From NCBI RefSeq assembly GCF_032444005.1, contig NC_091283.1, positions 629,114,001 to 629,178,000 on the forward strand: a stretch of 64,000 nucleotides of DNA. Reading direction: 5' to 3'. The notes below the pieces were generated by a model that saw nothing but the letters and a program-made list of their open reading frames with translations, searched no databases and was not told where the DNA came from. Every line of letters begins with the position of its first letter. The first letter of the stretch is position 1. Position numbers and translations under genes: made by a program. Source of the stretch: Ranitomeya imitator. Lineage: Eukaryota. Of this stretch, positions 3,263 to 41,077 are shown piece after piece.

Positions 3263-3264
3263 AT

Positions 3265-8900: not shown

Positions 8901-9704
8901 GTATCATATTCGATCAATTCCTGGTAAGAACACGTATGTGTACAATTATTGTTTTATATGTTGATTATTGGTAAAATATGATGAAACATTTCATTAACTT
9001 CCAGTAAGAATATGGGTATATTTATTATTCTATATGGGGTTATGGTCAGAATGCCATGGATATACAGATCCTGTAACCTATTTGCATCTGACAGGATTAC
9101 ATGTCCATTGACTTCTCCCACCCCTGGGAGATGTGAGCCCTGGCATCATAGGTCTTTGACCCAGTGTTCCCACCTCCTTATTAGGCCGGCCATGTCATAG
9201 AGATGAGCAGTCTTGCACCATACTTCTTGCTTATATACCTATATTATTCTCAATACATTGTTCTTTATAGAATGTTGGATCGTTTGCAGGATTTTATTGG
9301 TTACTTAGGTTTGTTGACATCAATAACTTTTAATGGAGATATATAGAATTTTTTTTTAATAACTTTTAATAAAATAATAGGTTTTATCTTAACAAAAATA
9401 TTTGGAAATGGAACATGTATTTTAGTGTATACTGGTCTCTAGGTTAATACGAAGGCCATCATAACAAATCCAACAAAATAGCTTTCATGGAACAATAAAT
9501 GATCCTGCTTACGTTCACATGTCTGATATAGGACTCGGTATTGCTTCTTCGTCAGTAGGCAAGGCATAATTGAATCTTATGTGCCTGTTTTCCATCCAGG
9601 TTCACTTGAATGGGAATGGAAACCTTCATATTGTTCCCCGCTATACAGGGCAGATTTTTTTTTTTTTGTGTGTGGCTGTGGGAAAAAGATGAGGGTAACG
9701 TATA

Positions 9705-15900: not shown

Positions 15901-17688
15901 AGAACAGGTCCCAATACTGACCCCTGCGGTACCCCACTGGTCACAGCAACCCAGTTAGAGACTATACCATTTATAACCACCCTCTGCTTTCTATCACTAA
16001 GCCAGTTACTAACCCATTTACACACATTTTCCCCCAGACCAAGCATTCTCATTTTGTGTACCAACCTCTTGTGCGGCACGGTATCAAACGCTTTGGAAAA
16101 ATCGAGATATACCACGTTCCTGGTATGTTCCTGGGCATGTGTATTTGTGATATTTCACCCATAATCCCCATACAGAACAATAGTTATACCCATATTCCTA
16201 TCAGAAGTAGATGAAATATGTTCCTGGGCATGTGTATTTGTGATATTTCACCCATAATCCCCATACAGAACAATAGATATACCCATATTCCTATCAGAAG
16301 TAGATGAAGTATGTTCCTGGGCATGTGTATTTGTGATATTTCACCCATAATCCCCATACAGAACAATAGTTATACCCATATTCCTATCAGAAGTACATGA
16401 AGTATGTTCCTGGACATGTGTATTTGTGATATTTCACCCATAATCCCCATACAGAACAATAGATATACCCATATTCCTATCAGAAGTAGATGAAGTATGT
16501 TCCTGAACATGTGTATTTGTGATATTTCACCCATAATCCCCATACAGAACAATAATTATACCCATATTCCTATCAGAAGTAGATGAAGTATGTTCCTGGG
16601 CATGTGTATTTGTGATATTTCACCCATAATCCCCATACAGAACAATAGTTATACCCATATTCCTATCAGAAGTAGATGAAGTATGTTCCTGAGCATGTGT
16701 ATTTGTGATATTTCACCCATAATCCCCATACAGAACAATAGTTATACCCATATTCCTATCAGAAGTAGATGAAGTATGTTCCTGGGCATGTGTATTTGTG
16801 ATATTTCACCCATAATCCCCATACAGAACAATAGTTATATCCATATTCCTATCAGAAGTAGATGAAATATGTTCCTGGGCATGTGTATTTGTGATATTTC
16901 ACCCATAATCCCCATACAGAACAATAGATATACCCATATTCCTATCAGAAGTAGATGAAGTATGTTCCTGGACATGTGTATTTGTGATATTTCACCCATA
17001 ATCCCCATACAGAACAATAGTTATACCCATATTCCTATCAGAAGTAGATGAAGTATGTTCCTGGGCATGTGTATTTGTGATATTTCACCCATAATCCCCA
17101 TACAGAACAATAATTATACCCATATTCCTATCAGAAGTAGATGAAGTATGTTCCTGGGCATGTGTATTTGTGATATTTCACCCATAATCCCCATACAGAA
17201 CAATAGATATACCCATATTCCTATCAGAAGTAGATGAAGTATGTTCCTGAGCATGTGTATTTGTGATATTTCACCCATAATCCCCATACAGAACAATAGA
17301 TATACCCATATTCCTATCAGAAGTAGATGCAGTATGTTCCTGAGCATGTGTATTTGTGATATTTCACCCATAATCCCCATACAGAACAATAGATATACCC
17401 ATATTCCTATCAGAAGTAGATGCAGTATGTTCCTGGGCATGTGTATTTGTGATATTTCACCCATAATCCCCATACAGAACAATAATTATACCCATATTCC
17501 TATCAGAAGTAGATGAAGTATGTTCCTGAGCATGTGTATTTGTGATATTTCACCCATAATCCCCATACAGAACAATAATTATACCCATATTCATATCAGA
17601 AGTAGATTAATTATGTTCCTGGGCATGTGTATTTGTGATATTTCACCCATAATCCCCATACAGAACAATAGTTATACCCATATTCCCT
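12950..17688 (-). repeat. 93-bp satellite A in reverse orientation, interrupted by CR1 at 14911-16115
   Basis: Reverse complement of the 3265-8900 unit; decays toward about 12820. Confidence 0.96.
14911..16115 (-). mobile_element. 5'-truncated CR1-clade LINE (C-terminal RT plus 3' UTR)
   Basis: ORF 15024-16115 contains YLDFSKAFDTVPH, GVPQGSVLGP and FADDTKL; 8-bp tandem tail (TAACATAG)3 at 14911-14934. Confidence 0.92.
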
Positions 17689-18337: not shown

Positions 18338-18544
18338 CAGTTGCTGCTCATTGCGAGTGGGTGTTAGTCAGTTGTGTGATTTTGCGTGGCGTTTCCAAAC
18401 AGAGATTCTTCCTTTTGCTCCTCCATAAAGTCCTGAGCCTGCAGTGTACACTGCAGCCATACTGCTTAGCGGAGCTGTGCTTATATTCTCGGGAAGAGGC
18501 TGCTCCCTAGCAAGAATATGTTTATGTATATTATCCGTGCTTGC

Positions 18545-19370
18545 TCCCTCTCCACGTACAAGACCCCTCTGCTCCCCCTCCCATGTACTAGACCCCTCTG
18601 CTCCCCCTCCCATGTACAAGACCCCTCTGCTCCCCCTCCCACGTACAAGACCCCTCTGCTCCACCTCCCATGTGCAAGACCCCTCTGCTCCTCCTCCCAT
18701 GTGCAAGACCCCTCTGCTCCTCCTCCCACGTACAAGACCCCTCTGCTCCACCTCCCATGTGCAAGACCCCTCTGCTCCTCCTCCCACGTACAAGACCCCT
18801 CTGCTCCACCTCCCATGTGCAAGACCCCTCTGCTCCTCCTCCCATGTACTAGACCCCTCTGCTCCCCCTCCCATGTACAAGACCCCTCTGCTCCCCCTCC
18901 CATGTACAAGACCCCTCTGCTCCCCCTCCCATGTACAAGACCCCTCTGCTCCCCCTCCCATGTACTAGACCCCTCTGCTCCCCCTCCCATGTGCAAGACC
19001 CCTCTGCTCCCCCTCCCATGTGCAAGACCCCTCTGCTCCCCCTCCCATGTGCAAGACCCCTCTGCTCCCCCTCCCATGTGCAAGACCCCTCTGCTCCCCC
19101 TCCCATGTGCAAGACCCCTCTGCTCCCCCTCCCATGTACAAGACCCCTCTGCTCCCCCTCCCATGTACTAGACCCCTCTGCTCCCCCTCCCATGTACAAG
19201 ACCCCTCTGCTCCCCCTCCCATGTGCAAGACCCCTCTGCTCCCCCTCCCATGTGCAAGACCCCTCTGCTCCCCCTCCCATGTGCAAGACCCCTCTGCTCC
19301 CCCTCCCATGTGCAAGATCCCTCTGCTTCCTCTCCCATGTGCAAGACCCCTCTGCTCCCCCTCCCATGTG
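18545..19370 (+). repeat. 29-bp C-rich minisatellite, part 1
   Basis: Unit CAAGACCCCTCTGCTCCCCCTCCCATGT(A/G). Confidence 0.95.
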
Positions 19371-20695
19371 TAAGAAAATCCCGAAGAGCATTATCGGTGG
19401 TGGAGACCAATAATATCTAAACTGAACGTGTGTGTATGTAAAACCACACACTGTTCTATTCCTGTCCAGTATACCACCACCTCTGCCTGGACCAAAGGAC
19501 AACTGCAATATGTACCAAATACAACAGAAAAAGAGCACCAAGCAGTCATGAAGTCCGAATAACAATAATTTTATTAAATCACAACATTATTAAAACCAGA
19601 CAAAAGATACATAATAGGGCTAAAAAGATGACACTAGGGGGTCACCCGCAACATACAGAGCCCAAGGCAGGGTGTCAACCTAACACAAAGACAATGCTAG
19701 CATACAGGGAACAGTACTAGATATAATAGCGTGGCCACATGTAACAAGAGAATACCTTTGGCCACAGTCCAAAAACGCTGTATAAAGACAAAATGTCCCT
19801 AAGCTCCAATGAGCCATGCACGTTACCTGATGCAGTTGGTCAGTAATGAAGGGACACCCGACCACCCCGACGCGCGTTTCGGTGTGTTACCTTCCTCAGG
19901 GGGCGCATAGGCAGACAGGGGGCTGAACCGCATAAATAGGGTCCCGAGGATAGGGCGGCGCAGCTGTGTGCAATAGCACTTCCGCTCAGCCTCAGTGAGC
20001 CGGGCGCGAGACGACCGGAAGTACGTGGGGCCCCACGTGACCAGGAAGTCCGCGCACGGTCAACAGAGAGTCGGCGGTAAAAAGAGCGCAAGCGCACATG
20101 TAATATGCGGCAAGTTACGCCATATTAGTGAAGGGCAACATACGGGCAAAGGGGAGCGGACGCCAAGCTAATGAAGGTAAAAAATAAATATACCAGGCGC
20201 CATCTAGCGATGCATCACAGTAGGCAGTTGCCGCACTGCCTATATAAGTAAAGATATAGATATGGATATACAAACACAATATGAGTATATAGGGGACTAA
20301 TTGGAAAGTATGATCCATAGTATAACCTATAGGTGTACATAATAACTAGAGAACCCATCGCCTCCACCAACATCCACAATATGTACAGTATAAAACAGAT
20401 GTATAAATATAATTAACGCATGTACAGATATACAATAATTTGGAAGGGATACATTCTCTAGTAGTAATGATCACTCATAACACCTGGTCACACATTCACA
20501 TAATTAATGAAATATGCCCCCCATATTAAGTATGCATCCAAGAACCGCGATATGCAAGATGGAGTTCTTCCTCTGCTCCAGAATTCTAACAAGTTCCCGA
20601 CAGTTGCCACCACCATATCCCTTCAAAGGAAAACCTAAGATTAAAGAACGAAAAAAGAAAAATTTAAACCCATATAAAAACATATACAATGGGGG
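19371..20695 (-). mobile_element. Solo Penelope-like pLTR inserted in the 29-bp minisatellite
   Basis: Contains a canonical hammerhead (19865-19903), a CpG-rich promoter-like segment (19940-20230) and an AT-rich tail with AATAAA on the minus strand; flanked by minisatellite on both sides. Confidence 0.65.
19865..19903 (-). ncRNA. Minimal type I hammerhead ribozyme
   Basis: CCCC-CUGAGGA-A-GGU(AACAC)ACC-GAA-ACGCGCGU-C-GGGG: intact core, palindromic stem III, GUC cleavage site. Confidence 0.8.
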
Positions 20696-20813: not shown

Positions 20814-20984
20814 GGGACGTACTAAAAAGAATGAAGAAAAGGAATAAATAAAAAGAATGAACATAATAACTTATAGGTCCAAAGAGATGGAGAGAAGTTA
20901 TAGATTTCTTATGCATCTTGGATATGAACTGAACATAAATTATATGTAAAAAAAATTAGGAAATCAACATAGATCCCGTAAAAA

Positions 20985-21430
20985 AAGGTGTATATTATAT
21001 TCCCTGAGCTTTATAGGTGGGCAATGAACATGGAATATATGTAGATAATAGGAGAATGAACACAGATCCCATATAAACAGGTGTATAATATATTCCCTGA
21101 GCCTGATAGGTGGGGAATGAAGATGAAATATATGTAGATAATAGAAGAATGAACACATATCCCATATAAACAGGTGTATATTATATTCCCTGAGCTTTAT
21201 ATGTGGGGAATGAAGATGAAATATATGTAGAGAATAGGAGAATGAACACATATCCCATATAAACAGGTGTATATTATACTCCCTGATCCTGATTAGTGGG
21301 GAATGAACATGAAATATATGTAGAGAATAGGATAATGAACACATATCCCATATAAACAGGTGTATATTATATTCCCTGAGCCTGATAGGTGGGGAATGAA
21401 CATGAAATATATGTAGATAATAGAGGAATG
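20985..21430 (-). repeat. 93-bp satellite B, left of the young PLE insertion
   Basis: Unit TCCCTGAGCCTGATAGGTGGGGAATGAACATGAAATATATGTAGATAATAGGAGAATGAACACATATCCCATATAAACAGGTGTATATTATAT on the + strand. Confidence 0.95.
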
Positions 21431-21964
21431 GGACAAACGAAAAGAGAAAGGGTAGACTAAAAATAGTATGCACAACCCAAAATATAGAGACAATCGGTAG
21501 TACTATAAAGCAAAACACCTTTATTAAACACCTCAAAAAACATGTTAAAAACATTTAAAAACAAATGTACAAATCCCTATACCCATCATATCCCATAATA
21601 AATGACAATCCCATAATACAATAGGAAAACAGTAATATCCTACCCTAGATGCACCTAGTCACATATGCTCTCCTGCAAAAATGTGCCTATACAGGCCGCA
21701 AAGGACTCGACCACAATATGTCAGTATCCACTGCTAATAACCAAAAAATGAAACATCCATGCAATACATGGTCCTGAGATTGGAATGTGATAGCATGCTA
21801 TATAACAGCTGTGGATACAACCTGTCCTGCGTCAATTCTGGTATATGGAGATGCAGCAATGTCAAAGGGCACAGAGCACCACAAGGGTTAAATCCACATA
21901 GAGCCAGGGAACATAACAGCCCCAAAATGGCCCTGAGGTAGGAGAAGGATAAGGTGGGAGCGCA

Positions 21965-22002
21965 CCCCACGCGTATCGCTGCCTCCGCAGCTTCGTCAGG
22001 GG
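21965..22002 (-). ncRNA. Non-canonical hammerhead-like motif in pLTR (left copy)
   Basis: Mirror of 32322-32359. Confidence 0.5.
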
Positions 22003-23250
22003 AAGTGAAACTAAAGGTGCAACAGTGTGTGCTTAAATAATAAATCCAATAAGGTAAATTGCATACCGGTGTGGGAGAGAGAGAGAGAGGTAAAAGCCGG
22101 AAGACGCCGGCGACGCCATGACGACAGGAACACAATCATAATGAACGGCAATCCTAGAGCGTCCAAAGGGTCACATGCGCACGCGCAAACCGCGGTATTC
22201 CATAGGACCACGTTGCGCACGCGCCGTGCCAGCCGGCTAGATGGACACGTCATAGGACACAGGGCAAAGAGAAATGGAATAAAGCCCGAGGACCGGACTA
22301 AGCTAGCGAGGCCGGCTAGATGGACACATCATGGGACACAGAGCAGAGGGGGTGGGATAAGGACCAAAAAGCCAGAGAGGGGGGAAGGGAGGGGAAAAAA
22401 AAAAAAAAACACAACAGGTAAAAAGAGGGCAGAGTGTGCATGTTGCAGCAAGACACAGAGGCACAAGATATCCACCCGCAGAATGCCGGGAGATATCACA
22501 ATCATAGACATATACTAGTGATTAAAGGCAAAACCGCCAAAGGACACAAAAAGACAGGGCATATAAAGCCACCCAGAAAACCTGAAAGGGAGAAAGGAAT
22601 ATTATTATTGTTGGCAAGTGCACAGGTATAAGTGCACGTAAACACCTATACAGCAACCATATACAGTATGTAACAATATCAGGCAAAAAACACACACATA
22701 TATAAATATAAACAGACTGATGTCCCTTGAGTCCGTAAGTATATGTACGAGTATTCTCTCAATGCCGCTATGTAGACGTTTCCGGTCCCCAGCTTATAGT
22801 CCCATAGTCGATGAGGCCGACACCATCCAGATCTATACGAGAGAAAGCACTCTTCATCACAAGCCCCTTCCGACTTGCCAATCTCAAATGCGCATCCGAG
22901 CCCATAGTCCATAATAGGAGTTTGCCATAAAATCCGCATTGTAGCTGTGAGAGCAAAATCTCTTCTGCATAAGATGTCCTTCCATTTGCCATAATGGCAT
23001 GCCGCACATCCACCCTCCAGGGTCCACTTCATTATCTAATGTGTCAAAGACCTCTGCATCCATGTTGGTCCCCACAGTAAGCTTGTAATATCCATATCCC
23101 AATTTCCAGGGATGATCATCACCCTTTTGGGTGCGTCCTCAGCCTTCCTGAATGGAGACAAATGCAAAATTAGATATGGGCACCAAATCTGAAGGGAACC
23201 AAATCAGACGTCCCAGAAACTAAAAATACCCCAATGAATCTACGCGCCAA

Positions 23251-25776
23251 CTATCCTAGGAACCCCGTGAAGAGCAATTCCTCATTTAGGCCCATGGGTG
23301 CGACCGCCTGAAGATCGAAAATCCACCTGGACTCAGCACGCAAGAGATAGTTAGATATATTGCCACCCCTTTCGCCACAGGAAACCCTCTGTAACCCCAC
23401 AACTTGCAAATCAATGGGCGAACCCCTATGTTTCAGCAAGAAATGCGCCGCCACAGGAGTCAAGATTTTACCTTTGCCTTGGTCCGTAGCCGCCAGGCGT
23501 ATGGTTGATACGTGTTTTTGAAACCTCTTACGTAGTTCTTGGGATGTTTGCCCTACATAGATCATATTACAAGGGCAAATTAGCACATAAATAACATTTC
23601 TGCTCCTGCAGTTGATGTAAGCCTTTAACGCATGTCTGCTGGAGTTCGTGGGGTGTGTAAATATGTCCCGGGTGGGCGTCATAAAGGGGCAGACATTACA
23701 TTCCCCACAGGGGAATGATCCCTTGAGGACAATACCCCTATTAAGTTTGACCGTGGGCCTAGAAAAATGGCTCCTGGTCAACAACTGCCTCAGATTCGGG
23801 GCTCTTCTAGATGTCAATAACGGCCTATTGCTGATGACTTGTGTGGTTTGCATATCTGTTTGCAAGATCGGCCAATGTCTAGTGAGGATGTGTCTTACCT
23901 GCCCCCAGCTGTCATTATAGTCCGTGATGAACCTCGTCTGCGATTCTCGGGAACGACCCACAGGAATCAAAAGTGAGGCCTGATCATGTTGTCTTGCTTG
24001 CTGGAAAGCCGTGGCAACCACTCGTTTGGGATAACTCCTCTGTCTGAAGCGGTCCGTCAGATCCCGAGCTTGCATCAGAAAGTCTTGATCCCGAGTGCAA
24101 TTACGTCTAATGCGTAAAAATTGTCCCGTCGGGACGCCCACCTTCGTGTGCCAAGGGTGAAAACTGTTGAACTCCAAAAGAGCGTTAGTAGCAGTGGGCT
24201 TCCGGAAAAGGTCCGTGACCAGCTTGTTCCCTTGTACGAAAATTCTCAGATCCAGAAAGCTAGTCGAACTGTTGGAAATAGAGTGGGTTAAAAAGATATT
24301 ATGGGGGTTGGAATTGAGGCTGTGGATGAAATCAGTACAACCCTCCCTGCTGCCCGACCAAATAAAGAATAAGTCATCGATATAGCGATGCCAATTCCGG
24401 ACATGATGTTGATATGCCAGGGATGGGTACACAAACACCTCCTCCCACCAACCTAAGAAGATGTTTGCGTAGGTTGGTGCACATTTCGCCCCCATTGCCA
24501 CTCCAGCTGTCTGTAAATAAAATGTTCTGTCAAACAAAAAATAGTTGTGATGAAGAACAAATTTCAGCAGATCCAACAGAAAAGAATCATGCCCCCGATC
24601 TGAGTGTGACAGTTTGTCTAGGCAAAAAGTAACCGCATGCAGGCCATCACTATGCTTGATGTTGGAGTACAAAGACTCCACATCACAAGTTACCAGGTAG
24701 AATTCTCCCGGCAGTTCTATCCGTCCACAGACCTCAATAAAATGGGCAGAATCCCTTATAAAGGAGGGCAAGGCCGTGACTATTGGCTGGAAGAAGAAGT
24801 CCAAATACTCACTTGCCCGCTCGCAGATACTCCCAATGCTAGAAACAATCGGCCTTCCTGGTGGTTTCTTCTCGTCTTTATGTATCTTCGGCAACATATA
24901 AAATGTTGCCGTGACCGGATGTTCCACCCATAAATATTTTTTCTCTTGGGGCGAGATAATGCCGAAACTTAGCGTCCTGCAGAGTAAAGAGTCAAATTTA
25001 GACGCAAACACTGCCGTGGGATCTGAAGGTAATTTTTGATAGCATCTGGGGTTAGTGAGCTGTCTATTGGCCTCCTCTAAATATGCTTCAATTGACCACA
25101 GCACCACATTGCCCCCCTTATCCGCCTCTTTAATCACAAATTCCTTGTTGCTTTGTAAGTCCCGCAAGGCCCGTTTTTCGGCAAGATTAAGGTTAGAGGA
25201 TCTACCCACCTGTGTTGGCATTGCCAGAATGTCTCGTTTCACCAGCTCAAAGAATATCTTGATTGCGGGTACCAAGGAAAAGGAAGGCGTTTTAAGGGAT
25301 CTATTTCTGCCAGGGAACTTTCTTCTGGTACACCCTGATTCGTTCTCCTCCAGTAGGGCTAGTAGATCTTGAAAGGCTTGGCGCTCATCCTCAGGTATTG
25401 ATTGTAGAATATCCGGTTTTTTGTAGATAACCTGAAATGTGAGGTTCCTACAAAACAAATAGAGGTCCTTAACTAAAGTAAATTTGTCGGCCGTATGTGT
25501 GGGAGCAAAAGTTAAACCCCTCTTCAGGACGGCAAGTTCCACCGCAGTAAGTTCATATTTAGAAAGATTTATTACCTGGAGGGTGGATGTAGAGGCTCCA
25601 GAGGTCTGTTCCGTATCAGGGGGGGAGGAGGCTTGATTTATTTCCGTCTGGTTGAGTATTTGTGGGGGTAAGTCGGATTGTGGTCCCTGTGGCGCGTTAT
25701 GCGTTTTCTTGTTCCCCCTCCGTCTCCTCCCACGCCTGGTCCGTGGTCTACCTCGCTTCCGGTGGAAGATAAAAAA
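23251..25776 (-). CDS. PLE reverse transcriptase + GIY-YIG endonuclease (left copy)
   Basis: Frame is open from the slippery site at 25770-76 to the stop at 23251; translation identical to the right copy. Confidence 0.93.
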   Translation of the reverse strand, partial: FFIFHRKRGRPRTRRGRRRRGNKKTHNAPQGPQSDLPPQILNQTEINQASSPPDTEQTSGASTSTLQVINLSKYELTAVELAVLKRGLTFAPTHTADKFTLVKDLYLFCRNLTFQVIYKKPDILQSIPEDERQAFQDLLALLEENESGCTRRKFPGRNRSLKTPSFSLVPAIKIFFELVKRDILAMPTQVGRSSNLNLAEKRALRDLQSNKEFVIKEADKGGNVVLWSIEAYLEEANRQLTNPRCYQKLPSDPTAVFASKFDSLLCRTLSFGIISPQEKKYLWVEHPVTATFYMLPKIHKDEKKPPGRPIVSSIGSICERASEYLDFFFQPIVTALPSFIRDSAHFIEVCGRIELPGEFYLVTCDVESLYSNIKHSDGLHAVTFCLDKLSHSDRGHDSFLLDLLKFVLHHNYFLFDRTFYLQTAGVAMGAKCAPTYANIFLGWWEEVFVYPSLAYQHHVRNWHRYIDDLFFIWSGSREGCTDFIHSLNSNPHNIFLTHSISNSSTSFLDLRIFVQGNKLVTDLFRKPTATNALLEFNSFHPWHTKVGVPTGQFLRIRRNCTRDQDFLMQARDLTDRFRQRSYPKRVVATAFQQARQHDQASLLIPVGRSRESQTRFITDYNDSWGQVRHILTRHWPILQTDMQTTQVISNRPLLTSRRAPNLRQLLTRSHFSRPTVKLNRGIVLKGSFPCGECNVCPFMTPTRDIFTHPTNSSRHALKAYINCRSRNVIYVLICPCNMIYVGQTSQELRKRFQKHVSTIRLAATDQGKGKILTPVAAHFLLKHRGSPIDLQVVGLQRVSCGERGGNISNYLLRAESRWIFDLQAVAPMGLNEELLFTGFLG

Positions 25777-26402
25777 TCATCACTAGAGCTTTCTTCACCA
25801 CGAGGTAGAGAGGTGGATATTGTAGTTGCTGTCACGGAACCATGGCCATAGGTTCTAGTACGGCGTGGGTTACCCCTGTGCGTCCATCTATACACTGCAT
25901 TTTGCTCAAAATCAGTCCTGTCCCTAAGAAGTTTTTTACGCTTCCTGCTCGTCACCTCTACCTCATATTTGTCCAAGGTCTCTTTAAGTGTGGTCTTGAA
26001 GGTATGCACCTGTGTCCCTTCAAATGTGTTCAATTTGGTTTCCAATTCTTTAATGGAGGTCTTGGTCGCCGTAAACAGGTCTCTGTCATGCTCCAATAAT
26101 AGGTTGATAAGTATATTTGAACAGCGTGTAAGACCCTGTTCCCAAATCTGTTAAAATGATCCTGAGGGTTCCCAAGCTGGAAATATGGAGACCCTCAAAC
26201 CACGAGGTATCAAACCTAATTTCAAATACTCTTCTAGACTCCTCATGTTCCACCAGAGTCTAATCCCTGTCTTATGTGCCCTCATCAATTCTGAGCACAC
26301 ATTGGAAAAACCTGATTCTGACTCAACAGCAACCGATCCAGAAAGATCAAACACATTGGATGGTTTGGCTAGCCAGGCCGCCTCCCTAGCCTCCCAGTCC
26401 AT
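25638..26402 (-). pseudogene. PLE ORF1 with in-frame stop at 26151-53 (left copy)
   Basis: Mirror of 27922-28686. Confidence 0.7.
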
Positions 26403-26455
26403 CACCCTAAACCCGAGTATGCAAAAACCAATATGGAAAAAAAAAAAAAAAAAAT

Positions 26456-26486
<31 letters not shown>

Positions 26487-27161
26487 TACAAAATTACGCA
26501 AAAATATGCGTGTGCTGCTCCCAAAGAACACCCCGGGACACGGGGCAACAACTAGCACAAGAGTAAAGATAGAAAGGGGCGCACCAATATATAATGTCAC
26601 AGTCACCATCAAGGGGTGCAATACTTAGTCTATAAATAGAACAGGACAAACGAAAAGAGAAAGGGTAGACTAAAAATAGTATGCACAACCCAAAATATAG
26701 AGACAATCGGTAGTACTATAAAGCAAAACACCTTTATTAAACACCTCAAAAAACATGTTAAAAACATTTAAAAACAAATGTACAAATCCCTATACCCATC
26801 ATATCCCATAATAAATGACAATCCCATAATACAATAGGAAAACAGTAATATCCTACCCTAGATGCACCTAGTCACATATGCTCTCCTGCAAAAATGTGCC
26901 TATACAGGCCGCAAAGGACTCGACCACAATATGTCAGTATCCACTGCTAATATCCATGCAATACATGGTCCTGAGATTGGAATGTGATAGCATGCTATAT
27001 AACAGCTGTGGATACAACCTGTCCTGCGTCAATTCTGGTATATGGAGATGCAGCAATGTCAAAGGGCACAGAGCACCACAAGGGTTAAATCCACATAGAG
27101 CCAGGGAACATAACAGCCCCAAAATGGCCCTGAGGTAGGAGAAGGATAAGGTGGGAGCGCA

Positions 27162-27199
27162 CCCCACGCGTATCGCTGCCTCCGCAGCTTCGTCAGGGG
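27162..27199 (-). ncRNA. Non-canonical hammerhead-like motif in the central spacer (5' pLTR of left copy)
   Basis: Identical to 21965-22002. Confidence 0.5.
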
Positions 27200-27837
27200 A
27201 AGTGAAACTAAAGGTGCAACAGTGTGTGCTTAAATAATAAATCCAATAAGGTAAATTGCATACCGGTGTGGGAGAGAGAGAGAGAGGTAAAAGCCGGAAG
27301 ACGCCGGCGACGCCATGACGACAGGAACACAATCATAATGAACGGCAATCCTAGAGCGTCCAAAGGGTCACATGCGCACATGGATACTGACATATTGTGG
27401 TCGAGTCCTTTGCGGCCTGTATAGGCACATTTTTGCAGGAGAGCATATGTGACTAGGTGCATCTAGGGTAGGATATTACTGTTTTCCTATTGTATTATGG
27501 GATTGTCATTTATTATGGGATATGATGGGTATAGGGATTTGTACATTTGTTTTTAAATGTTTTTAACATGTTTTTTGAGGTGTTTAATAAAGGTGTTTTG
27601 CTTTATAGTACTACCGATTGTCTCTATATTTTGGGTTGTGCATACTATTTTTAGTCTACCCTTTCTCTTTTCGTTTGTCCTGTTCTATTTATAGACTAAG
27701 TATTGCACCCCTTGATGGTGACTGTGACATTATATATTGGTGCGCCCCTTTCTATCTTTACTCTTGTGCTAGTTGTTGCCCCGTGTCCCGGGGTGTTCTT
27801 TGGGAGCAGCACACGCATATTTTTGCGTAATTTTGTA

Positions 27838-27868
<31 letters not shown>

Positions 27869-27921
27869 ATTTTTTTTTTTTTTTTTTCCATATTGGTTTT
27901 TGCATACTCGGGTTTAGGGTG

Positions 27922-28686
27922 ATGGACTGGGAGGCTAGGGAGGCGGCCTGGCTAGCCAAACCATCCAATGTGTTTGATCTTTCTGGATCGGTTGCTGTTG
28001 AGTCAGAATCAGGTTTTTCCAATGTGTGCTCAGAATTGATGAGGGCACATAAGACAGGGATTAGACTCTGGTGGAACATGAGGAGTCTAGAAGAGTATTT
28101 GAAATTAGGTTTGATACCTCGTGGTTTGAGGGTCTCCATATTTCCAGCTTGGGAACCCTCAGGATCATTTTAACAGATTTGGGAACAGGGTCTTACACGC
28201 TGTTCAAATATACTTATCAACCTATTATTGGAGCATGACAGAGACCTGTTTACGGCGACCAAGACCTCCATTAAAGAATTGGAAACCAAATTGAACACAT
28301 TTGAAGGGACACAGGTGCATACCTTCAAGACCACACTTAAAGAGACCTTGGACAAATATGAGGTAGAGGTGACGAGCAGGAAGCGTAAAAAACTTCTTAG
28401 GGACAGGACTGATTTTGAGCAAAATGCAGTGTATAGATGGACGCACAGGGGTAACCCACGCCGTACTAGAACCTATGGCCATGGTTCCGTGACAGCAACT
28501 ACAATATCCACCTCTCTACCTCGTGGTGAAGAAAGCTCTAGTGATGATTTTTTATCTTCCACCGGAAGCGAGGTAGACCACGGACCAGGCGTGGGAGGAG
28601 ACGGAGGGGGAACAAGAAAACGCATAACGCGCCACAGGGACCACAATCCGACTTACCCCCACAAATACTCAACCAGACGGAAATAA
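27922..28686 (+). pseudogene. PLE ORF1 / N-terminal region with in-frame TAA at 28171-73
   Basis: MDWEAREAAWLA...PAWEPSGSF*QIWEQGLTRCSNILINLLLEHDRDL...STRRK*; track ORFs 27703-28173 and 28228-28686 are in the same frame. Confidence 0.7.
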
Positions 28687-31073
28687 ATCAAGCCTCCTCC
28701 CCCCCTGATACGGAACAGACCTCTGGAGCCTCTACATCCACCCTCCAGGTAATAAATCTTTCTAAATATGAACTTACTGCGGTGGAACTTGCCGTCCTGA
28801 AGAGGGGTTTAACTTTTGCTCCCACACATACGGCCGACAAATTTACTTTAGTTAAGGACCTCTATTTGTTTTGTAGGAACCTCACATTTCAGGTTATCTA
28901 CAAAAAACCGGATATTCTACAATCAATACCTGAGGATGAGCGCCAAGCCTTTCAAGATCTACTAGCCCTACTGGAGGAGAACGAATCAGGGTGTACCAGA
29001 AGAAAGTTCCCTGGCAGAAATAGATCCCTTAAAACGCCTTCCTTTTCCTTGGTACCCGCAATCAAGATATTCTTTGAGCTGGTGAAACGAGACATTCTGG
29101 CAATGCCAACACAGGTGGGTAGATCCTCTAACCTTAATCTTGCCGAAAAACGGGCCTTGCGGGACTTACAAAGCAACAAGGAATTTGTGATTAAAGAGGC
29201 GGATAAGGGGGGCAATGTGGTGCTGTGGTCAATTGAAGCATATTTAGAGGAGGCCAATAGACAGCTCACTAACCCCAGATGCTATCAAAAATTACCTTCA
29301 GATCCCACGGCAGTGTTTGCGTCTAAATTTGACTCTTTACTCTGCAGGACGCTAAGTTTCGGCATTATCTCGCCCCAAGAGAAAAAATATTTATGGGTGG
29401 AACATCCGGTCACGGCAACATTTTATATGTTGCCGAAGATACATAAAGACGAGAAGAAACCACCAGGAAGGCCGATTGTTTCTAGCATTGGGAGTATCTG
29501 CGAGCGGGCAAGTGAGTATTTGGACTTCTTCTTCCAGCCAATAGTCACGGCCTTGCCCTCCTTTATAAGGGATTCTGCCCATTTTATTGAGGTCTGTGGA
29601 CGGATAGAACTGCCGGGAGAATTCTACCTGGTAACTTGTGATGTGGAGTCTTTGTACTCCAACATCAAGCATAGTGATGGCCTGCATGCGGTTACTTTTT
29701 GCCTAGACAAACTGTCACACTCAGATCGGGGGCATGATTCTTTTCTGTTGGATCTGCTGAAATTTGTTCTTCATCACAACTATTTTTTGTTTGACAGAAC
29801 ATTTTATTTACAGACAGCTGGAGTGGCAATGGGGGCGAAATGTGCACCAACCTACGCAAACATCTTCTTAGGTTGGTGGGAGGAGGTGTTTGTGTACCCA
29901 TCCCTGGCATATCAACATCATGTCCGGAATTGGCATCGCTATATCGATGACTTATTCTTTATTTGGTCGGGCAGCAGGGAGGGTTGTACTGATTTCATCC
30001 ACAGCCTCAATTCCAACCCCCATAATATCTTTTTAACCCACTCTATTTCCAACAGTTCGACTAGCTTTCTGGATCTGAGAATTTTCGTACAAGGGAACAA
30101 GCTGGTCACGGACCTTTTCCGGAAGCCCACTGCTACTAACGCTCTTTTGGAGTTCAACAGTTTTCACCCTTGGCACACGAAGGTGGGCGTCCCGACGGGA
30201 CAATTTTTACGCATTAGACGTAATTGCACTCGGGATCAAGACTTTCTGATGCAAGCTCGGGATCTGACGGACCGCTTCAGACAGAGGAGTTATCCCAAAC
30301 GAGTGGTTGCCACGGCTTTCCAGCAAGCAAGACAACATGATCAGGCCTCACTTTTGATTCCTGTGGGTCGTTCCCGAGAATCGCAGACGAGGTTCATCAC
30401 GGACTATAATGACAGCTGGGGGCAGGTAAGACACATCCTCACTAGACATTGGCCGATCTTGCAAACAGATATGCAAACCACACAAGTCATCAGCAATAGG
30501 CCGTTATTGACATCTAGAAGAGCCCCGAATCTGAGGCAGTTGTTGACCAGGAGCCATTTTTCTAGGCCCACGGTCAAACTTAATAGGGGTATTGTCCTCA
30601 AGGGATCATTCCCCTGTGGGGAATGTAATGTCTGCCCCTTTATGACGCCCACCCGGGACATATTTACACACCCCACGAACTCCAGCAGACATGCGTTAAA
30701 GGCTTACATCAACTGCAGGAGCAGAAATGTTATTTATGTGCTAATTTGCCCTTGTAATATGATCTATGTAGGGCAAACATCCCAAGAACTACGTAAGAGG
30801 TTTCAAAAACACGTATCAACCATACGCCTGGCGGCTACGGACCAAGGCAAAGGTAAAATCTTGACTCCTGTGGCGGCGCATTTCTTGCTGAAACATAGGG
30901 GTTCGCCCATTGATTTGCAAGTTGTGGGGTTACAGAGGGTTTCCTGTGGCGAAAGGGGTGGCAATATATCTAACTATCTCTTGCGTGCTGAGTCCAGGTG
31001 GATTTTCGATCTTCAGGCGGTCGCACCCATGGGCCTAAATGAGGAATTGCTCTTCACGGGGTTCCTAGGATAG
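28548..31073 (+). CDS. PLE reverse transcriptase + GIY-YIG endonuclease (right copy)
   Basis: VINLS...KRGLTFAPT N-terminus; RT motifs LPKIHK, GRPIVS, DVESLYSNI, GVAMGAKCAPTYAN and RYIDD; Cys-rich linker CGECNVC; GIY-YIG NVIYVLICPCNMIYVGQT...RFQKH. Uninterrupted. Confidence 0.95.
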   Translation, partial: FFIFHRKRGRPRTRRGRRRRGNKKTHNAPQGPQSDLPPQILNQTEINQASSPPDTEQTSGASTSTLQVINLSKYELTAVELAVLKRGLTFAPTHTADKFTLVKDLYLFCRNLTFQVIYKKPDILQSIPEDERQAFQDLLALLEENESGCTRRKFPGRNRSLKTPSFSLVPAIKIFFELVKRDILAMPTQVGRSSNLNLAEKRALRDLQSNKEFVIKEADKGGNVVLWSIEAYLEEANRQLTNPRCYQKLPSDPTAVFASKFDSLLCRTLSFGIISPQEKKYLWVEHPVTATFYMLPKIHKDEKKPPGRPIVSSIGSICERASEYLDFFFQPIVTALPSFIRDSAHFIEVCGRIELPGEFYLVTCDVESLYSNIKHSDGLHAVTFCLDKLSHSDRGHDSFLLDLLKFVLHHNYFLFDRTFYLQTAGVAMGAKCAPTYANIFLGWWEEVFVYPSLAYQHHVRNWHRYIDDLFFIWSGSREGCTDFIHSLNSNPHNIFLTHSISNSSTSFLDLRIFVQGNKLVTDLFRKPTATNALLEFNSFHPWHTKVGVPTGQFLRIRRNCTRDQDFLMQARDLTDRFRQRSYPKRVVATAFQQARQHDQASLLIPVGRSRESQTRFITDYNDSWGQVRHILTRHWPILQTDMQTTQVISNRPLLTSRRAPNLRQLLTRSHFSRPTVKLNRGIVLKGSFPCGECNVCPFMTPTRDIFTHPTNSSRHALKAYINCRSRNVIYVLICPCNMIYVGQTSQELRKRFQKHVSTIRLAATDQGKGKILTPVAAHFLLKHRGSPIDLQVVGLQRVSCGERGGNISNYLLRAESRWIFDLQAVAPMGLNEELLFTGFLG

Positions 31074-32321
31074 TTGGCGCGTAGATTCATTGGGGTATTT
31101 TTAGTTTCTGGGACGTCTGATTTGGTTCCCTTCAGATTTGGTGCCCATATCTAATTTTGCATTTGTCTCCATTCAGGAAGGCTGAGGACGCACCCAAAAG
31201 GGTGATGATCATCCCTGGAAATTGGGATATGGATATTACAAGCTTACTGTGGGGACCAACATGGATGCAGAGGTCTTTGACACATTAGATAATGAAGTGG
31301 ACCCTGGAGGGTGGATGTGCGGCATGCCATTATGGCAAATGGAAGGACATCTTATGCAGAAGAGATTTTGCTCTCACAGCTACAATGCGGATTTTATGGC
31401 AAACTCCTATTATGGACTATGGGCTCGGATGCGCATTTGAGATTGGCAAGTCGGAAGGGGCTTGTGATGAAGAGTGCTTTCTCTCGTATAGATCTGGATG
31501 GTGTCGGCCTCATCGACTATGGGACTATAAGCTGGGGACCGGAAACGTCTACATAGCGGCATTGAGAGAATACTCGTACATATACTTACGGACTCAAGGG
31601 ACATCAGTCTGTTTATATTTATATATGTGTGTGTTTTTTGCCTGATATTGTTACATACTGTATATGGTTGCTGTATAGGTGTTTACGTGCACTTATACCT
31701 GTGCACTTGCCAACAATAATAATATTCCTTTCTCCCTTTCAGGTTTTCTGGGTGGCTTTATATGCCCTGTCTTTTTGTGTCCTTTGGCGGTTTTGCCTTT
31801 AATCACTAGTATATGTCTATGATTGTGATATCTCCCGGCATTCTGCGGGTGGATATCTTGTGCCTCTGTGTCTTGCTGCAACATGCACACTCTGCCCTCT
31901 TTTTACCTGTTGTGTTTTTTTTTTTTTTTCCCCTCCCTTCCCCCCTCTCTGGCTTTTTGGTCCTTATCCCACCCCCTCTGCTCTGTGTCCCATGATGTGT
32001 CCATCTAGCCGGCCTCGCTAGCTTAGTCCGGTCCTCGGGCTTTATTCCATTTCTCTTTGCCCTGTGTCCTATGACGTGTCCATCTAGCCGGCTGGCACGG
32101 CGCGTGCGCAACGTGGTCCTATGGAATACCGCGGTTTGCGCGTGCGCATGTGACCCTTTGGACGCTCTAGGATTGCCGTTCATTATGATTGTGTTCCTGT
32201 CGTCATGGCGTCGCCGGCGTCTTCCGGCTTTTACCTCTCTCTCTCTCTCCCACACCGGTATGCAATTTACCTTATTGGATTTATTATTTAAGCACACACT
32301 GTTGCACCTTTAGTTTCACTT

Positions 32322-32359
32322 CCCCTGACGAAGCTGCGGAGGCAGCGATACGCGTGGGG
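32322..32359 (+). ncRNA. Non-canonical hammerhead-like motif in the 3' pLTR
   Basis: CCC-CUGACGA-A-GCUGC(GGAG)GCAGC-GAUA-CGCG-UG-GGG: hammerhead geometry, but GAUA replaces GAAA and G sits at the cleavage position. Confidence 0.55.
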
Positions 32360-32977
32360 TGCGCTCCCACCTTATCCTTCTCCTACCTCAGGGCCATTTT
32401 GGGGCTGTTATGTTCCCTGGCTCTATGTGGATTTAACCCTTGTGGTGCTCTGTGCCCTTTGACATTGCTGCATCTCCATATACCAGAATTGACGCAGGAC
32501 AGGTTGTATCCACAGCTGTTATATAGCATGCTATCACATTCCAATCTCAGGACCATGTATTGCATGGATGTTTCATTTTTTGGTTATTAGCAGTGGATAC
32601 TGACATATTGTGGTCGAGTCCTTTGCGGCCTGTATAGGCACATTTTTGCAGGAGAGCATATGTGACTAGGTGCATCTAGGGTAGGATATTACTGTTTTCC
32701 TATTGTATTATGGGATTGTCATTTATTATGGGATATGATGGGTATAGGGATTTGTACATTTGTTTTTAAATGTTTTTAACATGTTTTTTGAGGTGTTTAA
32801 TAAAGGTGTTTTGCTTTATAGTACTACCGATTGTCTCTATATTTTGGGTTGTGCATACTATTTTTAGTCTACCCTTTCTCTTTTCGTTTGTCCTGTTCTA
32901 TTTATAGACTAAGTATTGCACCCCTTGATGGTGACTGTGACATTATATATTGGTGCGCCCCTTTCTATCTTTACTCT

Positions 32978-35353
32978 GATAATAGAGGAATGAACACATA
33001 TTTCATATAAACAGTTGTATATTATATTCCCTGAGCCTGATAGGTGGGGAATGAACATGAAATATATGTAGAGAATAGGAGAATGAACACATATCCCATA
33101 AAAACAGGTGTATATTATATTCCTTGAGCTTTATATGTGGGGAATGAAGATGAAATATATGTAGAGAATAGAAGAATGAACACATATCCCATATAAACAG
33201 GTGTATATTATATTCCCTGAGCTTTATATGTGGGGAATGAAGATGAAATATATGTAGAGAATAGGAGAATGAACACATATCCCATATAAACAGGTGTATA
33301 ATATATTCCCTGAGCCTGATAGGTGGGGAATGAACATGAAATATATGTAAATAATAGGAGAATGAACACATATCCCATATAAACAGGTGTATATTATATT
33401 CCCTGAGCCTGATAGGTGGGGAATGAACATGAAATATATGTAAATAATAGGAGAATGAACACATATCCCATATGAACAGGTGTATATTATATTCCCTGAG
33501 CCTGATAGGTGGGGAATGAACATGAAATATATGTAAATAATAGGAGAATGAACACATATCCCATATGAACAGGTGTATATTATATTCCCTGAGCCTGATA
33601 GGTGGGGAATGAAGATGAAATATATGTAGGTAATAGGAGAATGAACACATATCCCATATAAACAGGTGTATATTATATTCCCTGAGCCTGATAGGTGGGG
33701 AATGAACATGAAATATATGTAAATAATAGGAGAATGAACACATATCCCATATGAACAGGTGTATATTATATTCCCTGAGCCTGATAGGTGGGGAATGAAG
33801 ATGAAATATATGTAGGTAATAGGAGAATGAACACATATCCCATATAAACAGGTGTATATTATATTCCCTGAGCCTGATAGGTGGGGAATGAACATAGAAT
33901 ATATGTAGAGAATAGAGGAATGAACACATAACCCATATACACAGGTGTATATTATATTCCCTGAGCCTGATAGGTGGGGAATAAACATGAAATATGTGTA
34001 GAGAATAGAGGAATGAACACATATCCCATATAAACAGGTGTATATTATATTCCCTGATCTTGATAGGTGGGGAATAAACATGAAATATATGTAGAGAATA
34101 GGAGAATGAACACATATCCCATATAAACAGGTGTATATTATATTCCCTGAGCCTGATAGGTGGGGAATGAAGATGAAATATATGTAGATAATAGGAGAAT
34201 GAACACATATCCCATATAAACAGGTGTATATTATATTCCCTGAGCTTTATAGGTGGGGAATGAACATGAAATATATGTAGAGAATAGAGGAATGAACACA
34301 TATCCCATATGAACAGGTGTATATTATATTCCCTGAGCCTGATAGGTGGGGAATGAACATGAAATATATGTAGATAATAGAGGAATGAACACATATCCCA
34401 TATAAACAGGTGTATATTATATTCCCTGAGCTTTATAGGTGGGGAATGAACATGAAATATATGTAGAGAATAGAGGAATGAACACATATCCCATATGAAC
34501 AGGTGTAGATTATATTCCCTGAGCCTGATAGGTGGGGAATGAACATGAAATATATGTAGATAATAGAGGAATGAACACATATTTCATATAAACAGTTGTA
34601 TATTATATTCCCTGAGCCTGATAGGTGGGGAATGAACATGAAATATATGTAGAGAATAGAGGAATGAACACATATCCCATATAAACAGGTGTATATTATA
34701 TTCCCTGATCTTGATAGGTGGGGAATAAACATGAAATATATGTAGAGAATAGGAGAATGAACACATATCCCATATAAACAGGTGTATATTATATTCCCTG
34801 AGCCTGATAGGTGGGGAATGAAGATGAAATATATGTAGATAATAGGAGAATGAACACATATCCCATATAAACAGGTGTATATTATATTCCCTGAGCTTTA
34901 TAGGTGGGGAATGAACATGAAATATATGTAGAGAATAGAGGAATGAACACATATCCCATATGAACAGGTGTATATTATATTCCCTGAGCCTGATAGGTGG
35001 GGAATGAACATGAAATATATGTAGATAATAGAGGAATGAACACATATCCCATATAAACAGGTGTATATTATATTCCCTGAGCTTTATAGGTGGGGAATGA
35101 ACATGAAATATATGTAGAGAATAGAGGAATGAACACATATCCCATATGAACAGGTGTAGATTATATTCCCTGAGCCTGATAGGTGGGGAATGAACATGAA
35201 ATATATGTAGATAATAGAGGAATGAACACATATTTCATATAAACAGTTGTATATTATATTCCCTGAGCCTGATAGGTGGGGAATGAACATGAAATATATG
35301 TAGAGAATAGGAGAATGAACACATATCCCATAAAAACAGGTGTATATTATATT
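32978..35353 (-). repeat. 93-bp satellite B, continuation right of the young PLE
   Basis: Same unit and orientation as 20985-21430. Confidence 0.96.
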
Positions 35354-36570
35354 CGAAAATAAAAATCATAGAGTTCATTCATAGAGTTATGCACATGAAG
35401 TTATACTAAGGTAACAAATCTCCAGTTAGTGATTCATGGGTTACCTTATATAGCAGCGATTAGGGAGTAATCCAGTGTTCGATCTCTAGATAGTCCCGGA
35501 GAAGGGAGGGGGTTTCGCAGAAACGTTAGTGGTTGGAGTTCAGGAAGTCTTCTGGAGCGCTGTCCCGGCCGATGACAGATGCCCTCTTGCTTCTCTGGTA
35601 GGCCCTTGCGCAAGCATGGAGCACTCGTGGTAGAAGCCAGCAGTGCGCGGTGAGCGTGCAGGACCTAGCGTGATGTCAGAAATCACGTGACCAGGCACGT
35701 GACAATGTACAGAGCTCTATGTGGACTAATTCCTAAGTGTTTTGGAAAGCTCGGATTCCTTCGTCAGGGATGGTCCATTGATTGACGGAGCTGTCTTTTA
35801 TCTTCAGAGTGTGTCATGTGACATAGAATTTAGTCAGTGAAGGATAAGAGTTCTACTTCACTTTTGAGACCTCTAGGTATTAGAGTGTCTAATTCAAATA
35901 TCCATCTATTCTCTGCAAGGGACATTTGTTTAACCCCTTTCTACCATCAGATGCACTATGCCATTTGTGTGACCTGGGACCTAATTCCCATGCACGGGAT
36001 AGTACGTCACCACCAATCAGCTGTGCTCACGGAGGAAGCGCGGCCGGGTGTCAGCTGATTATCACAGCAGACATCCGGCACTATGTGCCAGGAGCGGTTA
36101 CGGACCGTTCCCGGCACTCTAACCCCAGAAACACTGCGATCCAACAAGATCGCAGCATTGCGGTGGCATAGGGAAGCATCGCGCAGGGAGGGGGCTCCCA
36201 ATGTGTTTCCTTGGGACTCTCGGAACAACACAATGTGATTGCGTTGTTCCGAGGGTCTCCTCCCTGCGGGCCCCGGAACCAAGATGGCAGCGGGGTCTTT
36301 TTGGGTCCTGTATTTTAATATTCCTTAAAATATGGCAATTTGCATTGTATTGGAAAATGATAGCGATATCTTCCCTAATGTTAGGGTCTCTCATTTTTTT
36401 TTTTATTTTGGAGTAAATTTATCCTCGGTATGTTTTCCACTAGTTCTTTTGTTTGCATCAATTGACGTTTGTCGTACCCTTTGTTGACAAATTTCTGTGT
36501 CAGAAAATCAGCCTCCTTATTAAAGTCGTGGGTCTTAGAACAATTCCTATGTGCCCGTATATATTGACTC
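35354..36570 (-). mobile_element. Old PLE remnant, left arm (3' pLTR plus RT fragment)
   Basis: 35354-35930 mirrors 37540-38099; RT C-terminal remnant INFLDLNIF...TYHKPTD in ORF 36381-36752 (that part extends into the spacer). Confidence 0.8.
35934..36310 (+). mobile_element. Truncated left end of the piggyBac-type element family seen at 55470
   Basis: TTAA|CCCCTT start; clearly similar to 55470-55850; replaces part of the left arm. Confidence 0.7.
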
Positions 36571-40900: not shown

Positions 40901-41077
40901 ACCTTTTTTACGGGATCTATGTTGATATCCTAATTTTTTTTTTACATATAATTTATGTTCAGTTCATATCCAAGATGCAGAAGAAATCTATAACTTCTCT
41001 CCATCTCTTTGGACCTATAAGTTATTATGTTCATTCTTTTTATTTATTCCTTTTCTTCATTCTTTTTAGTACGTCCC

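Follow-up and report, generated by a model that had tools for sequence, protein, structure and literature searches.

The integration of Penelope-like elements (PLEs) is, to our knowledge, the least understood mechanism of retrotransposition in animals, with only one biochemical study devoted to it. A typical PLE insertion carries an inverted 5'-truncated copy, a one-sided tail and a target site duplication (TSD) (PMC8557442; PMC3846280). This canonical structure of EN+ PLEs has been described for Penelope/Poseidon, Neptune, Nematis and Naiad, and the tail is 30-40 bp long (PMC8557442; PMC3846280). The purified protein of a Poseidon-clade PLE cleaves and extends both target strands in vitro, and it uses two internal RNA sites to begin reverse transcription, the spacing of which defines the tail (PMC11167929). 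In transformed Drosophila melanogaster, newly transposed Penelope copies with long inverted repeats of the element body have been linked to siRNA production (summarised in PMC3681739).

A stretch of 64,000 nucleotides from the frog Ranitomeya imitator (the window) contains an insert of 11,547 bp that breaks up a 93-bp satellite (Table 1). It consists of two PLE copies arranged head-to-head, and both outer ends of the insert are element 3' ends. When the two halves were compared without gaps about the symmetry point (p+q=54324), 21431-26943 proved to be the exact reverse complement of 27381-32893 over 5513 bp, with 0 mismatches; immediately beyond these arms the identity collapses. The first-pass annotation of this DNA had described just such a head-to-head dimer, with no difference between its 5513-bp arms. 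Because the arms match without gaps or mismatches, the A15/T15 and A18/T18 runs are equally long in both, as had been remarked for the 15- and 18-nt homopolymers. The unit period is 5213 nt (27381-27764 equals 32594-32977). The left copy measures 5949-5950 nt (21431-27379/27380, minus strand) and the right copy 5597 nt, in agreement with the cDNA lengths of 5950 and 5597 nt given earlier for a 5213-bp unit. Each copy has terminal direct repeats; those of the right copy span 384 nt, those of the left 736/752 nt. The centre between the mirror arms, 437 bp, is asymmetric and built from upstream element sequence.

This architecture is the already known inverted-repeat-plus-tail type of PLE in a complete example, and not a new kind. 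As in the canonical EN+ PLEs, an ORF with RT and C-terminal GIY-YIG is accompanied by partial-tandem pseudo-LTRs, the inverted copy is joined on the 5' side, an extra tail is found at one outer end only, a single TSD surrounds the whole unit, there is no poly(A) tail and the target is repetitive and AT-rich. Unlike in those elements, the inverted copy is near full length, with about 450 nt of upstream sequence missing, and forms arms of 5.5 kb and no short fragment. In addition the tail is 84 nt rather than 30-40, and the pseudo-LTR is without a scored canonical hammerhead. That inverted pseudo-LTRs are known in PLEs but are usually short, as the first annotation held, agrees with the canonical architecture (PMC8557442; PMC3846280); the one described here is near-full-length. 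The locus shares with Penelope in D. melanogaster the long inverted repeats of the element body seen there in newly transposed copies. The host and the clade are different, however, and the copies there are described as "rearranged", not as two complete mirror copies with a defined TSD and tail (PMC3681739).

Table 1. Coordinates of the insert, its parts and the flanking satellite in the window
Feature	Position	Strand	Remarks
Host 93-bp satellite, left part	20957..21430	+	Tandem Repeats Finder, period 93
TSD, left copy	21416..21430	+	15 bp, GATAATAGAGGAATG
Left PLE copy	21431..27379	-	3' terminus 21431 = unit position 300; one full 5213-nt unit plus 5' extension up to the equivalent of 32142
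3' pseudo-LTR, left copy	21431..22182	-	752 nt, without the tail; direct repeat of 26644-27379 save for a 16-nt indel
Hammerhead-like box, further copy	21962..22004	-
RT-GIY-YIG frame, left copy	23251..25776	-	From the ORF list; exact mirror of 28548-31073
N-terminal ORF, left copy	25638..26402	-	In-frame TAA 26151-26153
Asymmetric central segment	26944..27379	-	5' pseudo-LTR extension, left copy only (alignment)
Hammerhead-like box, further copy	27159..27201	-
Filler base A at the head-to-head joint	27380	.	Fits neither copy's continuation
Right PLE copy	27381..32977	+	5597 nt; unit position 1 to position 384 of the next unit
N-terminal ORF, right copy (MDWEAREAAW...)	27922..28686	+	Premature TAA 28171-28173 (tblastn, translation)
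RT-endonuclease frame, right copy	28548..31073	+	Open; 763 aa from the first start codon, 28782
Hammerhead-like box	32320..32362	+	CUGACGA, 5-bp helix with GGAG loop, GAUA, CGCG
3' pseudo-LTR, right copy	32594..32977	+	384 nt, = 27381-27764
84-nt tail	32894..32977	+	Authentic unit sequence, positions 301-384, right end only
TSD, right copy	32978..32992	+	15 bp, GATAATAGAGGAATG
Host 93-bp satellite, right part	32993..35354	+	Oriented as the left part

Motifs and homologs support the identity of the element as a PLE. The frame 28548-31073 carries DKG (residue 219), YIDD (residue 465), CGECNVC and VIY..YVG. The order in its C-terminal part is CGECNVC, VIY..(10)..YVG and then the R/H/E positions. 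A Pfam GIY-YIG match covers residues 650-688 of the 763-aa ORF with E=4.7e-4, just under the curated cut-off, and the match to the RVT_1 profile is weak, as is usual for PLEs. Homologs of the RT-endonuclease protein number 453, the best of which are frog proteins annotated with RVT_1 and GIY-YIG. The relatives of the ORF are Ranitomeya RT/GIY-YIG proteins, and the RefSeq protein P0003, 99% identical, is encoded on two chromosomes. Solved structures, searched by sequence, gave no match. The RT with DKG/YxDD, the Cys-rich linker with GIY-YIG, the pseudo-LTRs and the inverted 5' copy with tail and TSD are all present, and together with the frog PLE homologs they bear out the original assignment to Penelope.

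By tblastn the N-terminal ORF has homology with the N-terminal parts of related PLE proteins from frogs. Its codon 84 is TAA in both arms and AAA in other copies. Where this ORF begins to overlap the RT frame there is a T_TTT_TTA heptamer (28548-28554). The description of the pair as two complete RT-GIY-YIG copies therefore holds for the RT-endonuclease ORF, which is open, but not for the N-terminal ORF, which has the TAA in both arms.

Three Rfam scans, including one on a 111-nt stretch, found no hammerhead family at the gathering score or at E<=10, and a canonical hammerhead in the pseudo-LTR was rejected on this ground. The hammerhead-like box at 32320-32362, which is also a contig break point in three runs, departs by our own reading from the catalytic core, with U for the expected A14 and G at the cleavage position. 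The hammerhead motif is typical of canonical PLE clades and is absent in Naiad/Chlamys. Since it is not universal among PLEs, a missing motif is no bar to membership.

Removing 21431-32992 in silico brings back regular 93-bp satellite units with the flanks in register. About one satellite unit in five contains the 15-mer of the TSD without change, which rules it out as a unique sequence. Because it is a common satellite variant, the TSD is deduced from the phase of the repeat, identity alone being no proof. A deletion of 78+93k bp would mimic a 15-bp TSD, and a random phase would yield 14-15 bp in about 2/93 cases. Of the single 15-bp TSD claimed earlier around the pair, what stands is that the outer 15-mers lie in the correct satellite phase; with so common a 15-mer, the duplication is phase-based only.

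The flanks also bear on the question of an assembly artefact, in which a chimeric or fold-back long read made an inverted duplicate of a single-copy insertion. Perfect palindromes on the kilobase scale are a known failure mode. Tandem and inverted PLE structures are said to trouble assemblies (PMC8557442), and 27380-27404 is uncovered by contigs of runs X1 and X2. A fold-back would invert the flank too, however, whereas here the flanks are direct and in phase for the 15-bp TSD, a coincidence with the low random frequency given above. The asymmetric centre bears a filler base and lacks 16 nt, and the outer termini are two different ones, both used by other copies. The hole in the cover is uninformative, since the repeat is multi-copy and its contigs are short and built from k-mers; among the Logan contigs listed for the public runs, all of them short, none bridges 27380 or either outer junction. 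An artefact is, on this evidence, unlikely.

The right copy outruns the equivalent of the left copy's end by 84 nt. The 3' ends had been placed 84 nt apart (32977 versus the equivalent of 32893), and 32894-32977 is indeed found at the right end only. This difference is the known PLE "tail". Contigs of other copies exit to different flanks at 27677-27682 (unit positions 297-302) and likewise at 32977/27765 (unit positions 384/385). Since other copies end at both positions, both termini are regular start points. A duplicated start-site motif for the two termini was rejected, the 84-nt segments before and after position 300 showing no significant similarity (21% of shuffles reach the same score). 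The octamer CCCTTTCT, common to both ends, lies 11-14 nt ahead of each and is an anecdote only.

The locus resembles the product expected from PAc (Poseidon of Anolis carolinensis), with its two-strand cleavage and extension and two internal starts of reverse transcription (PMC11167929). Both outer ends are 3' ends, and the stretch between the two start sites makes the difference between them. The position of the start sites is different, 111-118 nt inside the ORF in PAc and 242 and 158 nt upstream of the ATG (27922) here, and in vitro neither start site shows a strand preference.

At the centre, alignment showed 26944-27379 to be 32142-32593 minus 16 nt (the equivalent of 32569-32584), and this deletion sits 9 nt from the start of the right copy. 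Contigs of other copies run on past 27379 with unit sequence. A repeat finder had indicated a 16-nt overlap or microhomology; its ungapped extension is poor, and the alignment gives a blunt joint with one base. Neither microhomology nor a palindrome was found at the joint, 26944-26955 and 27369-27380 being mismatched throughout, and the alignment of the centre revealed no inner duplication. The 436-nt extension of the left arm is missing from the 5' end of the right arm.

These details are difficult to reconcile with self-priming, in which the first-strand cDNA folds back, or the RT switches onto its own product, with no second target priming. Such a snap-back would agree with the perfect identity of the arms, and self-priming has been proposed for PLE inverted repeats with palindromes at the inverted junction (PMC3846280). 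The joint here is, however, free of palindrome and complementarity, and the extra 84 nt of the right arm are authentic element sequence that is absent from the left arm, where there was no template for them. A snap-back would have run on into inverted flank, and it would not leave the left extension without a counterpart in the right arm. The tail and the palindrome-free joint led us to reject this origin, which we regard as improbable.

Four variants common to both arms (28171, 30325, 31418 and 31654) are in the minority relative to the rest of the family. Contigs cover 28171 and 30325 in all four public runs and 31418 and 31654 in three, and every contig of the covering runs reads another base at these sites (at 28171, A in all four). 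The common minority variants indicate that both arms come from one source lineage. We consider it likely that the pair represents one retrotransposition event of a young PLE into the 93-bp satellite, because there is one flanking duplication in phase, the flanks are co-oriented, no inner duplication is present and at least four variants are common to the arms. In a two-step history, a single insertion would have come first. A second member of the family would then have landed precisely at its 5' end in the opposite orientation, or the copy would have been duplicated locally in inverted form, and gene conversion would have erased the differences. The pseudo-LTR junctions of PLEs can be targets of their own endonucleases (PMC11167929), and gene conversion does occur in inverted repeats. 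Yet the single pair of duplications is on the outer flanks, with none at the centre; the second insertion must have hit the boundary of element and flank exactly, without a duplication of its own; and with the same four minority variants in both arms the second copy must share the source. This is the least likely of the alternatives.

As both outer ends are element 3' ends, the geometry of the single event fits priming from both sides of the break. Priming by both sides, with the cDNAs then joined, had been suggested in the first-pass annotation and is the best explanation; the outer 3' ends, the recurrent termini and the blunt joint agree with it. The anatomy, the identity as a PLE, the common minority variants and the recurrent 3' termini are observed; how the steps followed each other, the use of a different start site by each strand and the supply of proteins in trans we infer as follows. 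The GIY-YIG endonuclease of the element would break both strands of the target, with 15 bp between the nicks. On the top strand, the 3'-OH that follows 21430 would prime the copying of a read-through element RNA from unit position 300; on the bottom strand, the 3'-OH at 32978 would use the other start site, position 384. The first cDNA would comprise one unit plus about 740 nt and the second one unit plus 384 nt. Their 3' ends would then be joined head-to-head by an end-to-end template jump or by end joining, with one untemplated base added, and each joined cDNA would serve as template for the other strand. Both cDNAs would be copied from RNA of the same defective source copy, with the nonsense codon in its N-terminal ORF; because of this defect the proteins were probably supplied in trans.

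Zero differences between two independent 5.5-kb cDNAs are expected at RT error rates up to about 1e-4. Difference-free cDNAs could also mean that one arm was copied from the other, or later gene conversion. The dual-priming model leaves the 16-nt deletion unexplained, and the 84-nt tail stands against the 30-40 nt usually reported. In L1 twin priming the 3'-OH of the second target strand primes too, and the internal joint between the cDNAs frequently shows little homology or none. Both primers there use one RNA and each segment is copied once, giving an inversion without duplication. Here, in contrast, nearly the whole template is present twice, with 5513 nt of the unit in both orientations, which does not fit twin priming of the LINE-1 type, as that leaves no duplicated element sequence.

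Tentatively, and with rather less confidence than in the single event, the locus may be an intact, full-length footprint left by a dimeric PLE RNP that carried out target-primed reverse transcription on both strands in concert. The protomers would copy their own RNAs from different internal start sites, and the short inverted pseudo-LTR familiar from PLEs would be the 5'-truncated version of such a symmetric product. In that case mirror dimers of full length would arise regularly in this frog genome and would be a ready supply of 5.5-kb hairpin RNA for silencing. The locus offers no new principle and is a useful reference specimen: a clean natural product of a young insertion, with outer 3' ends, two start sites, longer-than-unit cDNAs and a blunt joint with a filler base. 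The mobilisation of a copy with a nonsense codon probably points to proteins acting in trans. In large amphibian genomes, perfect 5.5-kb inverted repeats of this kind hamper both assembly and the annotation of repeats; they are also candidate dsRNA sources.

The geometry of the insert recurs in a small unrelated element of the window (62736-63638), which has inverted termini, a one-sided 40-nt extension and a 14-bp TSD. Its geometry was counted as support for dual priming in one event.

The insertion at 21431-32977 is a head-to-head dimer of Penelope-like element (PLE) copies. Ungapped comparison about the symmetry point showed 21431-26943 and 27381-32893 to be exact reverse complements, with no mismatch over 5513 bp and with both long homopolymer runs of the same length in the two arms, as the first-pass annotation had claimed. 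Beyond the arm limits complementarity is lost at once. The period of the element is 5213 nt, based on the identity of 27381-27764 to 32594-32977, and this 384-nt direct repeat agrees with the unit length and the right cDNA of 5597 nt proposed earlier. Element 3' ends lie outermost in the dimer, against target DNA, and the two 5' ends face each other in the middle. Rather than a neutral spacer, all but one base of the 437-bp centre (26944-27379) is the left copy's own upstream sequence, identical to 32142-32593 of the right copy apart from one 16-nt gap. The bases absent from the left copy's upstream extension are TGTTTCATTTTTTGGT, equivalent to 32569-32584. The base at the joint, 27380 (A), matches neither copy. 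A 16-nt overlap at the joint, suggested by a repeat finder, was ruled out as an artefact of ungapped extension.

Coordinates of the PLE copies, their hammerhead-like box and the surrounding repeats
Feature	Position	Strand or orientation	Remark
Right PLE copy	27381-32977	+	5597 nt
Left PLE copy	27379 -> 21431	-	
Hammerhead-like box in pseudo-LTR	32320-32362; 21962-22004; 27159-27201	+; -; -	~40 nt; deviates from catalytic core
Satellite A	3264-8908; 12951-17686	forward; inverted	93 bp
Satellite B	20957-35354; 38099-40923	forward; inverted	93 bp; forward array is host of dimer
C-rich repeat	18542-19375; 41075-42940		29 bp

The element is assigned from its sequence to the endonuclease-bearing PLEs, an assignment based on motifs, homologs, pseudo-LTRs, the inverted copy, the one-sided extension and an insertion with no poly(A) tail. 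The frame 28548-31073 contains DKG, YIDD, a CGECNVC linker and a VIY..YVG endonuclease motif, with weak Pfam matches to RVT_1 and GIY-YIG. Homologs numbered 453 in a database search; proteins of Ranitomeya imitator and R. variabilis ranked first and those of other frogs came next, and many of the homologs carry RVT_1 and GIY-YIG annotations. A RefSeq model 99% identical to the element protein is found on two chromosomes of GCA_032444005.1. Over 27100-33080, 79% of the element's sampled words occur in a DNA run from a different organism (among runs X3-X5, organisms B and C), which also has many contigs at least 99% alike to the element; judged by these contigs, at least one further species has the family in almost unchanged form. 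Three scans gave no Rfam score for a canonical hammerhead ribozyme in the element. Contigs from two DNA runs (X1 and X3) and one RNA run (X20) part from the element on either side of the hammerhead-like box, so the box appears to be common to other repeat families of the genome.

The architecture of the dimer is the published canonical PLE architecture. Inverted pLTR structures had been noted earlier as known for PLEs but usually short; the literature bears out the first part. Long inverted repeats have also been reported in new Penelope copies of transformed flies (PMC3681739). The dimer is unusual in being so complete, with an inverted copy close to full length, two identical arms and readable sequence at every junction.

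The two 3' ends differ by 84 nt, as previously noted, and alignment places the extra 84 nt of the right end in authentic unit sequence, positions 301-384 counted from 27381. Several contigs of other copies (runs X1 and X2) exit to unrelated flanks at 27677-27682, positions 297-302, and further exits occur at 32977 (cDNA run X15) and 27765 (X20), positions 384/385. Thus both termini are regular ends of the family. The difference is the PLE "tail", published as a 30-40-bp extension on just a single end of the inserted unit (PMC8557442; PMC3846280), but it is longer in the dimer. Biochemical work attributed the tail to reverse transcription starting at two neighbouring internal sites (PMC11167929).

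The 11,547-bp insert splits a 93-bp satellite, which has the same orientation on either side. The 15-mer GATAATAGAGGAATG closes the left flank and opens the right flank, and in silico removal of 21431-32992 restores regular 93-bp units. The exact 15-mer occurs in roughly one-fifth of the satellite units, so the duplication is deduced from the phase of the repeat, and formally the same flanks could be left by a 78+93k-bp deletion. A 15-bp TSD is nevertheless the natural reading of this phase, given that a small unrelated element of the same geometry in non-satellite DNA (62736-63638) has a TSD of 14 bp. Of the single TSD claimed at the outset, the restored phase stands; the 15-mer itself is frequent in the satellite.

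Two-strand priming is the simplest account of the dimer. A staggered break with nicks 15 bp apart would allow priming at position 300 by the top-strand 3'-OH and at position 384 by the bottom-strand 3'-OH. The cDNA 3' ends would be joined via one untemplated base, each cDNA becoming the template for the other strand. The earlier proposal of longer-than-unit cDNAs primed on both sides of the break and joined at their ends fits the two outer 3' ends and the central 5' joint. Purified PLE protein cleaved and extended both strands, unlike R2 or L1, and the protein itself is predicted to be dimeric (Frangieh et al., PMC11167929). The locus can serve as a reference case for the model of two-strand priming. 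Snap-back, in which self-primed copying of its own cDNA gives the second arm, was proposed earlier for palindromic PLE joints (PMC3846280) but is contradicted here by the lack of complementarity at the joint and by the 84 nt on the right arm that are absent from the left. A fold-back assembly artefact is unlikely; it would have inverted the flank, and would yield neither the correct satellite phase, nor a centre that is asymmetric and carries a deletion and a filler base, nor two different regular termini. Among the listed short k-mer contigs of the public runs, none crosses 27380. A two-step origin is likewise improbable: another copy from the same source would have had to insert precisely at the boundary and leave no duplication of its own. 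Under two-strand priming, zero differences between two independent 5.5-kb cDNAs are expected, by computation, as long as the error rate does not exceed about 1e-4 per base. The same identity sets an age limit of about 0.14-0.27 million years at an assumed 1-2e-9 substitutions/site/year, without gene conversion.

The copies had been described as complete; this holds for the RT-endonuclease frame with its DKG/YIDD/GIY-YIG-type motifs but not for the N-terminal ORF. The N-terminal 200 residues of ~1000-aa relatives align to a separate frame from ATG 27922, which in the right copy is interrupted by TAA at 28171-28173 (codon 84), with the same TAA at the mirror position 26151-26153 of the left copy. 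All contigs of four public runs have A at 28171, giving AAA, and at 30325, 31418 and 31654 all contigs likewise read another base than the arms in runs covering each position. At least four minority variants, one a nonsense codon, are therefore common to both arms and tie them to one source lineage. From the shared nonsense codon it follows that the copied RNA was defective; other copies presumably supplied the proteins. The two frames overlap by ~140 nt (28548-28686), from a T_TTT_TTA heptamer at 28548, and joining them requires a -1 shift. The gene model of a related family omits the overlap region, which hints at a conserved shift as a candidate. A contig of RNA run X20 omits 346 nt (30424-30769, GT..AG ends; not a multiple of three) inside the RT-endonuclease ORF, which suggests that a family member has spliced transcripts.

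Loose ends bearing SMART oligo and poly(A) identify run X15 as cDNA. One of its contigs has a poly(A) tail at 32822, 18 nt past AATAAA (32799-32804) and upstream of both insertion termini, and in another a SMART oligo marks a 5' end at 32401, downstream of where the left copy's 5' end lies. Neither of the 3' termini that served in insertion would be present in the polyadenylated mRNA. These single contigs weakly favor a longer read-through RNA over the polyadenylated mRNA as the insertion template, in agreement with internal initiation.

The 16-nt deletion (26944-26952 versus 32569-32593) is the sole difference between the left upstream extension and the internal unit, and stops 9 nt short of the point equivalent to the right copy's first base. 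Two discontinuities so near in a 5213-nt unit have a chance of about 0.4%, so coincidence is unlikely; the pair may reflect a favoured RNA end or a site of template jumping. No recurrent 5' ends were found near them.

The small element at 62736-63638 has inverted termini (62736-62862 and 63471-63597) that mismatch at 4 positions; its right end alone is extended, by 40 nt (63599-63638), and its 14-bp TSD is TCAATATAAGACTA. It gave no hammerhead at the Rfam gathering threshold. CTGAAGA...GAAA boxes are present in both arms, and the element shares its one-sided-tail geometry with the 11.5-kb dimer.
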